A stretch of DNA of 35,779 nucleotides. Source: Schizochytrium sp. TIO01 (lineage: Eukaryota; Protista; Bigyra: Labyrinthulomycetes). Where the stretch lies: assembly GCA_004764695.1 (NCBI GenBank), contig SMSO01000037.1, positions 1 to 35,779 on the forward strand, written 5' to 3'. Positions 15,005 to 18,759 of this stretch are shown in pieces. The notes beneath the pieces were generated by a model. The model searched no databases. It was given only the letters and a program-made list of their open reading frames with translations, and was not told the DNA's origin. Made by a program: the position numbers and the translations under genes. Every line of letters starts with the position of its first letter. Positions within the stretch are counted from its first letter, which is position 1.

Positions 15005-18000
15005 ATGTCAGACCACCCAGATGTTGTCGATGCCCTTGAGCAGCTTCGGAATGGCGCTACAGCATTGTCGTAGGTTAACATGGTACTCTCGGTCGGTCGC
15101 TCGGTCGGTCGCTCGGTCGGTCGCTTGTTTGCTTGCTTGCTTGCTTGCTTGCTTGCTTGCTTGCTTGCTTGCTTGCTTGCTTGCTTGCTTGCTTGCTTGC
15201 TTGCTTGCTTGCTTGCTTGCTTGCTTGCTTGCTTGCTTGCTTGCTTGCTTGCTTGCTTGCTTGCTTGCTTGCTTGCTTGCTTGCTTGCTTGCTTGCTTGC
15301 TTGCTTGCTTGCTTGCTTGCTTGCTTGCTTGCTTGCTTGCTTGCTTGCTTGCTTGCTTGCTTGCTTGCTTGCTTGCTTGCTTGCTTGCTTGCTTGCTTGC
15401 TTGCTTGCTTGCTTGCTTGCTTGCTTGCTTGCTTGCTTGCTTGCTTGCTTGCTTGCTTGCTTGCTTGCTTGCTTGCTTTGCACGGTGTTGCTTTTGTTGT
15501 TATTGTATTGCAAGTTTATGCAATCGCTTGTTTGTTTGTTTGTTTGATGGATGGATGAGTTGTCTGTTTGAGTGAGTATACATCCATCGAACAAAGAGCA
15601 AAATGACAACACAACAAAGATAAATGCTGAAAGCCAACCTAGATCACTCACGTCCATGCATGTATCCAATGTAATGCATTGCAATGTAATGTATTGCTTG
15701 CCATCATTCAATCAAATCGACAGTCTTTCCAACAACAAAATCGGCTCAGAGGGCGCCAAGGCAGTAGCTGCGGCGCTGAAAGTGAACCGGTCTCTGATAT
15801 CACTTCGGTAAGTTGTGTACGCAACACCGCAGCTCGTGGACTTGTTTGTACATGATGCTTGGTTTGTTGTTTGGTGGGTGGGTCGGTGTTGTTTTGCAAG
15901 TTTATGCAATGGCTTGTTTGTTTGATGGATGGATGGGTTGTCTGTTTGAGTGAGTATACATCCATCGAACAAAGAGCAAAATGACAACACAATAAAGATA
16001 AATGCTGAAAGCCAACCTAGATCACTCACGTCCATGCATGCGTGCGTGCATCTATTGTAATATGTAACGTGTAATGTATTGCTTGCCATCATTCAATCAA
16101 ATCGACAGTCTTTGTGAGAACCATATCGGCGACGAGGGCGCCAAGGCAGTGGCTGCGGCGCTGAAAGAGAACCGGTCGCTGACATCACTTGAGTAAGTTG
16201 TCTACGCAACACCGCAGCTCGTGGACTTGTTTGTACATGATGCTTGGTTTGTTGTTTGGTGGATGGGTCGGTGTTGTTTTGCAAGTTTATGCAATCGCTT
16301 GTTTGTTTGATGGATGGATGAGTTGTCTGTTTGAGTGAGTATACATCCATCGAACAAAGAGCAAAATGACAACACAACAAAGATAAATGCTGAAAGCCAA
16401 CCTAGATCACTCACGTCCATGCATGCATGCGTGCATCTATTGTAATATGTAACGTGTAATGTATTGCTTGCCATCATTCAATCAAATCGACAGTCTTTCG
16501 TGGAACAAAATCGGCTCAGAGGGCGCCAAGGCAGTGGCTGCGGCGCTGAAAGAGAACCGGTCGCTGACATCACTAAAGTAAGTTGTCTACGCAACACCGC
16601 AGCTCGTGGACTTGTTTGTACATGATGCTTGGTTTGTTGTTTGGTGGGTGGGTCGGTGTTGTTTTGCAAGTTTATGCAATCGCTTGTTTGTTTGATGGAT
16701 GGATGAGTTGTCTGTTTGAGTGAGTATACATCCATCGAACAAAGAGCAAAATGACAACACAACAAAGATAAATGCTGAAAGCCAACCTAGATCACTCACG
16801 TCCATGTATGCATGCGTGCATCTATTGTAATCTGTAACGTGTAATGTATTGCTTGCCATCATTCAATCAAATCGACAGTCTTGGAGGCAACGCTATCGGC
16901 TCAGAGGGCGCCAAGGCAGTGGCTGCGGCGCTGAAAGAGAACCGGTCGCTGACATCACTATCGTAAGTTGTCTACGCAACACCGCAGCTCGTGGACTTGT
17001 TTGTACATGATGCTTGGTTTGTTGTTTGGTGGGTGGGTCGGTGTTGTTTTGCAAGTTTATGCAATCACTTGTTTGTTTGTTTGTTTGTTTGCTTGTTTGT
17101 TTGTTTGTTTGTTTGATGGATGGATGGATGAGTTGTCTGTTTGAGTGAGTATACATCCATCGAACAAAGAGCAAAATGACAACACAACAAAGATAAATGC
17201 TGAAAGCCAACCTAGATCACTCACGTCCATGCATGCATGCGTGCATCTATTGTAATATGTAACGTGTAATGTATTGCTTGCCATCATTCAATCAAATCGA
17301 CAGTCTTCAACGCAACGAAATCGGCTCAGAGGGCGCCAAGGCAGTGGCTGCGGCGCTGAAAGAGAACCGGTCGCTGACATCACTAAAGTAAGTTGTCTAC
17401 GCAACACCGCAGCTCATGGACTTGTTTGTACATGATGCTTGGTTTGTTGTTTGGTGGGTGGGTCGGAGTTGTTTTGCAAGTTTATGTAATCGCTTGTTTG
17501 TCTGATGGATGGATGAGTTGTCTGTTTGAGTGAGTATACATCCATCGAACAAAGAGCAAAATGACAACACAACAAAAATAAATGCTGAAAGTCAACCTAG
17601 ATCACTCACGTCCATGCATGCATGCGTGCATTTATTGTAATATGGAACGTGTAATGTATTGCTTGCCATCATTCAATCAAATCGACAGTCTTTCGTGGAA
17701 CGATATCGGCGACGAGGGCGCCGAGGCAGTGGCTGCGGCGCTGAAAGAGAACCGGTCGCTGACATCACTTGAGTAAGTTGTCTACGCAACACCGCAGCTC
17801 GTGGACTTGTTTGTACATGATGCTTGGTTTGTTGTTTGGTGGGTGGGTCGGTGTTGTTTTGCAAGTTTATGCAATCGCTTGTTTGTTTGATGGATGGATG
17901 AGTTGTCTGTTCGAGTGAGTATACATCCATCGAACAAAGAGCAAAATGACAACACAACAAAAATAAATGCTGAAAGTCAACCTAGATCACTCACGTCCAT

Positions 18001-18759
18001 GCATACATGCGTGCATCTATTGTAATATGTAACGTGTAATGTATTGGTTGCCATGGTTTAATCAAATCGACAGTCTTAAAGGCAACGGCATCTACTTAGA
18101 GGGTGCCAAGGCATTGGTTGCGGCTCTGAAACAGAACCGGTCGCTGACATCACTTGAGTAAGTTAATTTAGTAACCCCCCTTGGACTTGTTGGTACATGA
18201 ACCATGTGTGCTTGGTGTGTTGGAATGCACGATGTTGTTTCGTCCAGTTTTGTTTTGCAAGTTTGCGCGATTGCTTGTTCGCTTGATTCTGTTGCTGATG
18301 TTTTGGTTGGGGTGGATCTAACAGAGAACACGACCACATCAAAGGAGAAATGAAATTGTACTATCATTCCTTTGGTACCTTAGATGAGGTTCAATTGTTA
18401 ACTGACGAACGGAGATGATGCTATTTGGTCTGGTAAGTCATAGATTAAGATTGAGCCATGTAGGACAGAGGGAGCTGAAATTGAATGAAGAGATTTATCA
18501 TGCAAAGACACGAAGGACAAGCCTTGAGCAGATCTCTCGTGAGCTTGGTTGTATTCATGCTGTAAACAATGCACTTTCTATACCATCTTCAGTGAAACTC
18601 AGTCGTTTTGCACAGAGTCTGCTTGCTAGCAGTAATGGTGAGCAGAGCTCGAAAGAGGAATTTCTTGCTACGCAGAAAGTAGAGCTTGATATATTGGAAG
18701 CTTTAATCGTTGCCTTTAGTGAATCATTGGGATTGCTGGGCCCTTACATTTTCGAATGA
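15005..18759 (+). CDS. Spliced RI-like LRR gene, paralog B; 7 tandem 84-nt LRR exons plus C-terminal domain, ~322 aa, intact
   Basis: Exons: 15005-15069 (MSDHPDVVDALEQLRNGATAL), 15724-15807, 16109-16192, 16494-16577, 16879-16962, 17304-17387, 17689-17772, 18074-18157, 18444-18759. GT..AG phase-2 introns. Total is 969 nt, in frame. The last acceptor (catag, 18443) is the least certain boundary. Confidence 0.88.
15131..15478. repeat. (GCTT)n microsatellite, ~87 perfect copies, in intron 1 of LRR gene B; preceded by 3 x ctcggtcggtcg
   Basis: Direct reading. Confidence 0.95.
15481..18163 (+). repeat. 385-bp exon+intron tandem repeat, ~7 units (one unit 425 bp)
   Basis: Exon starts are spaced 385, 385, 385, 425, 385 and 385 bp apart. 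The 425-bp unit has an expanded GTTT/GATG tract. Confidence 0.95.

Follow-up and report, generated by a model that had tools for sequence, protein, structure and literature searches.

What is encoded, if anything, by a tandem array of nearly identical 385-bp units that lies between a 5S rRNA gene and an 18S-5.8S-28S ribosomal DNA (rDNA) unit? The question is raised by a 35,779-nt stretch of DNA from the labyrinthulomycete Schizochytrium sp. TIO01 (contig SMSO01000037.1, positions 1 to 35,779; here C36:1-35779, or the window). An earlier annotation made from the letters alone, called here the sequence-only reading, had proposed a hypervariable array of leucine-rich repeats (LRRs), one per exon, forming a candidate variable immune receptor. 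As judged from the exon structure and its conservation, the array is the predicted LRR domain of an intact, spliced gene composed of a start exon, seven one-repeat exons of the ribonuclease inhibitor (RI) class and an exon specifying a C-terminal domain (CTD).

Tandem Repeats Finder reported a period of 385 bp and 6.7 copies in the window. Within the array seven LRR exons of 84 nt, each preceded by CAG and followed by GTAAGT, are open only in frame offset 1, that is, phase 2 on both sides. The claim of seven 84-nt phase 2-2 exons in 385-bp units holds in its coordinates, borders and frame. The parts of the gene are:

15005–15069, + strand: start exon; ATG, 21 codons and 2 bases, donor GTAGGT, phase 2
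15070–15723, + strand: intron 0; (GCTT)89 microsatellite at 15123–15478, last ~230 nt matching the repeated intron
15724–15807, + strand: LRR exon 1; LSNNKIGSEGAKAVAAALKVNRSLISL; Pfam LRR_6
16109–16192, + strand: LRR exon 2; LCENHIGDEG...; LRR_6; joint 16192>16494 in runs X15 and X18
16494–16577, + strand: LRR exon 3; LSWNKIGSEG...; LRR_6; exon border at the joint 16192>16494
16879–16962, + strand: LRR exon 4; LGGNAIGSEG...; LRR_6; joint 16962>17304 in X15, two contigs
17304–17387, + strand: LRR exon 5; LQRNEIGSEG...; LRR_6; exon border at the joint 16962>17304
17689–17772, + strand: LRR exon 6; LSWNDIGDEGAEAV...; LRR_6
18074–18157, + strand: LRR exon 7; LKGNGIYLEGAKALVAALKQNRSLTSL; edge repeat, the most diverged of the seven; LRR_6
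15808–18073, + strand: six homogenised introns alternating with LRR exons 2–6, five of 301 nt and one of 341 nt
18158–18449, + strand: last intron; its first ~130 nt alone resemble the repeated intron
18450 (or 18444)–18759, + strand: last exon; orphan CTD of ~102 amino acids, predicted helical; TGA at 18757–18759

The whole model reads in frame from ATG to TGA with every exon phase consistent and would specify a protein of ~320 amino acids. The product of the start exon, MSDHPDVVDALEQLRNGATAL, supplies the helix and tail of a partial first repeat. Its ATG and phase-2 donor are kept in all ten of the other distinct loci recovered, the Roc-COR-TIR gene on C34 included, and its 65-nt length in nine; the copy at C36:2.32 Mb (L020/L031) lacks 9 nt but remains in frame. 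In the last intron two in-frame acceptors are possible (AG 18442–18443 or 18448–18449), and the junction codon is GAA, specifying E, either way. A third acceptor (AG 18413–18414), which would lead to an immediate stop and an LRR-only protein, was dropped, since the downstream frame is homologous to the C-terminus of a second LRR gene in the window and to ~100 intact copies elsewhere. Intron 16963–17303 reaches its 341 nt through a TTGT microsatellite expansion; the introns otherwise align nearly without differences. The (GCTT)89 repeat in the first intron is perfect and is preceded by (TCGG)n.

The exons were searched singly and not as a joined protein. All seven match Pfam LRR_6 (PF13516), of the ribonuclease-inhibitor class, exons 3 and 6 alone scoring above the gathering threshold. 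The repeat has the 28–29 residues of RI-like LRRs (LxxLxLxxNxIgxxGaxxLaxaLxxNxx), and a single exon suffices to hit solved structures of RI-like LRR proteins, NOD2 and RI. In LRRs of this geometry the x residues of LxLxxN line the concave face and the ascending loop. The AlphaFold2 model of a relative (P0002), in which strand and helix alternate, agrees with this arrangement: the segment equivalent to SLxLxxNxI is a strand and EGAKAVAAALKEN is a helix.

The CTD is an orphan. It yielded no Pfam family, no PADLOC match and nothing usable in the ESM Atlas, and a set of 1.84 billion representative proteins contains just two relatives, one of them a 250-amino-acid LRR+CTD protein (P0002). AlphaFold2 models of the domain are helical, at low confidence. 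It is 35% identical [E 6e-11] to the C-terminus of the window's second LRR gene (900–3096, + strand). That gene has approximately eight RI-type one-repeat exons whose repeats and introns are diverged and not homogenised, and it looks like an older member of the family which has escaped homogenisation.

Sequencing runs were searched as Logan contigs. Two of these (X15 and X18) were guessed to be RNA; X1 is a DNA run, and X20 is certainly RNA and very small. Joints of the GT..AG type lie exactly at the exon borders at 16192>16494 (X15 and X18) and 16962>17304 (X15), as the sequence-only reading had predicted. In X15 and X18 many further contigs run from an exon end through TCTT into a different variable patch and on into an exon body, and represent paralog transcripts; one contig joins an LRR exon end to AATGACC..., the start of the CTD exon in locus L021. 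The spliced forms are absent from the DNA run X1 and the spliced junction pattern is absent from the genome. Two metagenome scans, one with the spliced pattern and one with the genomic junction pattern, gave no match. Splicing of the LRR family is thus supported at family level.

The module is not confined to the window. A 686-nt intron-exon-intron query produced at least 334 matches at 92–100% identity, most of them at 95–98%, on many contigs. A 41-nt scaffold pattern, allowing up to three mismatches, occurs 969 times in the genome and never in the reversed control, which puts the genome-wide number of such exons at ~970. All 158 exons taken from 31 sampled loci are 84 nt long and open. The CTD exon is present in about 100 mostly intact copies, with amino acid identities of 34–95%. 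Approximately 132 non-redundant units of the ~970 were analysed, and the per-site diversity profile is based upon 105 units in 15 arrays.

Variation within the units has a codon-structured distribution. In the window's own units the four x codons are variable at every one of their 11 bases; elsewhere in the exon 16 of 73 bases vary (Fisher P=7e-7), and in the introns 23 of 301 columns (P=5e-12). Mean pairwise differences are 0.67 for the x codons, 0.077 for the rest of the exon and 0.027 for the introns. Introns which were said to differ by only a few bases do so (2.7%), and the residues read off for the junction codon (S/R/D/N/S/N/D/E), the pairs before N (SN/CE/SW/GG/QR/SW/KG) and the position after it (K/H/K/A/E/D/G) are all correct. 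Among the 105 units diversity is 0.60–0.72 at exon positions 5–8, 14, 16 and 82–83 (0.60 at position 16) and 0.35–0.51 at positions 9–10, 23–25 and 84. The remaining exon is mostly at 0–0.06, synonymous third positions included, and the intron median is 0.019. Both the concentration of differences at the x positions and the near-invariance of the helix part, which the sequence-only reading had described, are seen in the larger sample as well.

The 132 exons contain 101 distinct 12-nt patches. S, D, N, G, R and Y are frequent among the pooled variable residues. Position 82 and the junction codon go together in a small set of junction types, TGA (36), CAA (36), ATC (26), CGA (8) and ATA (7). At exon positions 23–25 (for example 15746–15748) one finds either Ser TCA (80) or Asp GAC (44), in which all three bases differ, with almost no intermediates; this dimorphism suggests that two old unit types have been kept side by side. 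TCTT at the start of the exon hardly varies, even though changes at positions 2 and 4 could be silent. Taken with the linkage of position 82 to the junction codon, described below, this looks like a constraint at the nucleotide level on the acceptor side.

The variable patches behave as coding sequence. Among 396 variable codons there are no stops, against 21.5 expected. Because the classical ratio of nonsynonymous to synonymous rates (dN/dS) is saturated at these codons, pairs of patches one step apart and intron divergence were used as yardsticks in its place. The one-step pairs comprise 55 nonsynonymous and 3 synonymous changes, where 20% synonymous would be expected (P=0.0012). Units with two or fewer differences at the 367 other sites still differ at 52% of the variable sites. 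Diversifying selection is, on these sequence comparisons, the best explanation for the diversity preserved at the x codons.

The scaffold around the patches has had a different history. At non-variable sites neighbouring units differ by 3.3% and units on different contigs by 3.9%. At the same loci the gene flanks are merely 72–90% identical and the array-linked CTDs mostly 57–95% (amino acids). Because the units are 96–97% identical but the flanks and CTDs far less so, the modules must have been homogenised genome-wide after the genes had diverged. Arrays also turn over: genes with near-identical start exons or 95%-identical CTDs differ in the number of their patches and in the sets which they carry. 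Divergence of the variable patch is uncorrelated with that of any flank (rho < 0.08), neighbouring 100-nt segments correlate at ~0.3, and the two intron ends at 0.04. An inverted, near-identical duplicate on C30 differs at 12 places over 3686 nt; five of these differences change several bases at once, from one common junction type to another (CAA to ATA, CGA to ATC). Since these are switches between pre-existing types they carry the signature of conversion. The intron splits the variable strand, and exchange within the intron therefore reassorts the junction residue and the three variable residues that follow. The proposal of crossover or conversion between introns together with diversifying selection gains support from units homogenised unlike their flanks, from the C30 switches and from the one-step changes.

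In some arrays (C13, C34) the last LRR exon is of a distinct kind, and a single large exon with Roc, COR-A and TIR domains comes after it. The genome contains ~17 such close LRR-Roc-COR-TIR paralogs of the module, the TIR in their last exon matching TIR_2 [6e-12 to 9e-14]. Between Roc-type units, sampled from four arrays, and CTD-type units there is no fixed difference, and the pairwise divergence is the same (3.2–4.2%). By this comparison of four arrays, at least some of the ~17 paralogs apparently build their LRR domains from the same pool of ~970 modules. The gene in the window itself ends in the CTD exon: no Roc-COR match was found within C36:1-35779, and the gene has no TIR. The Roc-COR-TIR genes are not subtelomeric, and the notion that the arrays are purely subtelomeric was rejected, since the same units form the LRR domain of these genes. 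One Roc-COR-TIR copy, L032 (C13:4008400-4018399), has a frame break between COR and TIR at locus positions 2154–2157, with an open frame of 682 amino acids; the 100%-identical twin of this copy, at C30:10241, keeps an open frame of 867 amino acids, and the break is either a fresh frameshift or an assembly error.

Approximately 100 dispersed, donor-like arrays and ~17 effector-bearing genes with one module pool, and variable patches which are uncoupled from their flanks, might bring to mind a diversification programmed into clonal growth, through targeted hypermutation or copy-choice from subtelomeric cassettes as in lamprey VLR. We give this very little credence. The germline genes are already complete and in frame, linkage within the junction types is strong, and no bias of a known hypermutator is evident in the raw counts of transitions and transversions (19:39 in the patches versus 165:174 elsewhere).

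The explanation which we consider probable is that of an LRR-CTD gene family with shared, homogenised modules and a diversified binding face, serving in immunity-like recognition. Several points weigh against it. Runs X15 and X18 are guessed, rather than known, to be RNA. The junction contigs cannot be assigned to the locus in the window over a paralog because their short sides are 22–25 nt. The sole certain RNA run, X20, holds only a 232-nt contig inside intron 2 (16215–16446), which could be a retained intron, antisense RNA or DNA carry-over. The one-step count was built on non-independent pairs, and, dN/dS being saturated at the variable codons, the synonymous share among differing codon pairs is 2–6%, approximately the random value. 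Position 82 of the exon is synonymous, as variable as its neighbours and tightly linked to the junction codon; because of this silent linkage part of the variation must be old haplotypes reshuffled and not new mutation. The patches could owe part of their persistence to mismatches that impede conversion, with no need for positive selection. The sample comprises ~132 of the ~970 units, and some arrays occur in duplicate in the assembly (for example C27 = C13, C5 = C30). Lastly, the putative immune role rests on domain analogy.

On a rival view the genes would be real LRR genes whose x positions are unconstrained, the mismatch islands blocking heteroduplex extension, and the products ordinary RI-like scaffolds, for example cytoskeletal or flagellar proteins, rather than receptors. 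The best solved-structure matches of one exon include the axonemal proteins RSP15, DRC5 and LRRC34; hypervariability at the linked, synonymous position 82 would fit, as would the dominance of three types at the junction codon and a CTD without a recognisable signalling fold. Unconstrained sites should, however, carry stops, and the variable codons have none; the one-step changes are overwhelmingly nonsynonymous, and the number of distinct patches is high. Nor are patches protected from copying, since identical neighbouring units occur through whole-unit duplication. The same pool moreover supplies Roc-COR-TIR proteins, an architecture of immune type. We regard the scaffold proposal as unlikely, though one to be taken seriously.

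Frequent unequal crossover and conversion of short tracts, both inside single arrays and from one array to another, hold introns and scaffold 96–97% identical genome-wide. The four codons of the beta-strand and ascending loop (x in LxLxxNxI) meanwhile stay near maximally diverse and free of stops. In the recognition reading, diversifying selection favouring new binding specificities would maintain and renew this diversity. The proteins may then serve an innate-immunity-like system as its recognition modules. The TIR paralogs would link recognition to a GTPase switch and a putative NAD-cleaving effector, and the CTD form to a helical, possibly oligomerising domain. A receptor or immune role is an inference from LRR geometry, from the module pool shared with Roc-COR-TIR proteins and from the analogy with brown-algal ROCO proteins.

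The setting of the array is provided by two further features:

14414–14532, − strand: 5S rRNA gene (Rfam RF00001, 96.5 bits), 470 bp upstream of the LRR gene ATG and divergent from it
22038–27560, + strand: 18S-5.8S-28S rDNA unit; downstream context, outside the gene

The same arrangement recurs through the genome, 36 of the 40 18S copies listed having a same-strand CTD exon 1.5–4.0 kb upstream. On this evidence there are ~100 predicted LRR-CTD genes, one between 5S and 18S at nearly every chromosome end. Because the upstream flank, including the 5S gene, is common to other LRR loci at 72–90% identity, the 5S gene and the LRR gene seem to be carried along as a pair. Arrays followed by rDNA were also observed facing each other 35–45 kb apart or in the middle of multi-Mb contigs (C30:5479351-5521035; C31:3163793-3218284; C36:2319147-2335999), and the rDNA of the window is directed away from the contig start. 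The assembly contigs seem to be chromosomes joined end to end, and position on a contig is therefore uninformative on the distance to a telomere.

A layout of this kind has been described in Aurantiochytrium limacinum as LORE-TEARS Group 0: ~9 units of ~385 bp near almost every telomere, between 18S and a 5S gene transcribed away from the telomere (bioRxiv 10.1101/2023.06.15.545109). Its authors took it for a spacer that resembles no known sequence and may help to maintain the ends (bioRxiv 10.1101/2023.06.15.545109). Matched by position and size it is apparently the same DNA element: the period in the window is likewise 385, and the array stands between the 5S gene (−) and the 18S gene, whose start is at 22038 (+). 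Unlike in that description, each unit here is an LRR exon plus an intron in a complete gene. One might nevertheless retain the spacer and treat the LRR-like frames as relics of a non-coding sequence maintaining chromosome ends or rDNA, a view favoured by the fit in position and size at almost all ends and by a homogenisation which parallels that of the rDNA, whose 18S copies are about 100% identical. We find it highly improbable. Every sampled exon is open and exactly 84 nt, the start and CTD exons are conserved, the junction contigs are exact to the splice site, the variation is structured by codon, and the same units build the LRR domain of the Roc-COR-TIR genes away from the subtelomeres. 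A structural role could coexist with coding.

The sequence-only reading knew of no description in thraustochytrids. None was found in which these repeats are LRR genes, nor was anything found in the literature searched that links the repeats to LRRs or describes such genes in this group; apparently the same DNA had, however, already been published as the Group 0 spacers.

The closest known system is the LRR-ROCO family of brown algae (Ectocarpus; PMC3341825, PMC11378527), to which the sequence-only reading had also pointed. The parallel stands for the one repeat per exon and, as to Roc-COR, for the paralogs; the gene in the window, which ends in the orphan CTD, lacks that module. Both families belong to stramenopiles and give each LRR an exon of its own, with exons of equal length, symmetric phase-2 introns and a repeat number that varies; in both the concave face is under positive selection, Roc-COR lies downstream (here in the paralogs) and a function as immune receptors has been proposed. 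The Ectocarpus exon is 72 nt and specifies one type I LRR of 24 amino acids (PMC3341825), of a plant-specific-like class, whereas here it is 84 nt and 28 amino acids, of the RI class. Further differences are the introns homogenised to 96–97% genome-wide, the ~970 modules, the subtelomeric position by rDNA, the orphan CTD of the window gene, the C-terminal TIR of the paralogs and the unicellular, heterotrophic host. Non-brown-algal species of the SAR group (stramenopiles, alveolates and Rhizaria) have been credited with no more than four ROCOs each, Schizochytrium aggregatum being among those named (PMC11378527).

Other comparisons are more partial. Lamprey VLRs likewise have hypervariable concave-face LRR residues and dispersed, donor-like cassettes exchanged by gene conversion; in VLRs, however, the germline gene is incomplete and is assembled somatically, by copying, with cytidine deaminases, whereas here it is complete and in frame. 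Plant NLR and RLP clusters (the xxLxLxx model) and TIR-NLRs resemble the present family in exposed LRR residues under diversifying selection, in crossover and conversion, and in a TIR in part of the family; they differ from it in having NB-ARC and not a Roc-COR GTPase switch, and it is set apart by the C-terminal TIR, the single repeat per exon and the extreme homogenisation of the scaffold. Like the subtelomeric var and VSG families, the LRR-CTD genes occupy most chromosome ends, with ectopic recombination between ends and rapid turnover of the variable part. Var and VSG products are surface antigens of pathogens, whereas here one deals with a free-living protist and LRR proteins of intracellular type. 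We know of no monoallelic expression of these LRR genes.

These likenesses invite an extension of the recognition reading, which we offer tentatively and think more doubtful than not. The ~100 subtelomeric LRR-CTD genes might serve as a recombination reservoir, trading binding-face modules with each other and with the ~17 Roc-COR-TIR sensors. This would amount to a germline or clonal diversification, var- or VLR-like, coupled to telomere and rDNA recombination and possibly directed against mirusviruses or parasites. Aurantiochytrium limacinum, which this genome appears to match by its subtelomere layout, carries persistent mirusviruses.

A published "non-coding subtelomeric spacer" becomes a family of ~100 genes, and, if the recognition reading is correct, receptor diversification by one exon per repeat, so far a matter of brown algae, is extended to a culturable, genetically manipulable, unicellular heterotrophic protist. 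A diversity of ~0.7 at the variable codons, set in surroundings of 0.02–0.04, would make the family a clean system in which concerted evolution and diversifying selection coexist. The Roc-COR-TIR link and the mirusviruses render the immune hypothesis testable, namely NLR-like sensing with rapidly shuffled LRRs in protists.

Downstream of the 28S gene the window has two tandem arrays, 28929–30537 (412 bp, 3.9 copies) and 31752–33776 (362 bp, 5.5 copies), which lie in AT-rich DNA (34% GC) and fit the published LORE-TEARS Groups 1 and 2 by size and position.

Upstream of the 5S gene the window holds two paralogous open reading frames (ORFs) arranged head to head, 4502–6646 (−) of 714 amino acids and 9676–11724 (+) of 682 amino acids. 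The latter has weak kinase-like matches at its C-terminus (APH and Pkinase, below the Pfam cut-offs) and the former none. An ORF of 170 amino acids at 11828–12340 (−) matches Fic/DOC [1e-5]; in its motif, KPFAFGNGRTAR, the usual histidine of HPFxxGNGR is replaced.

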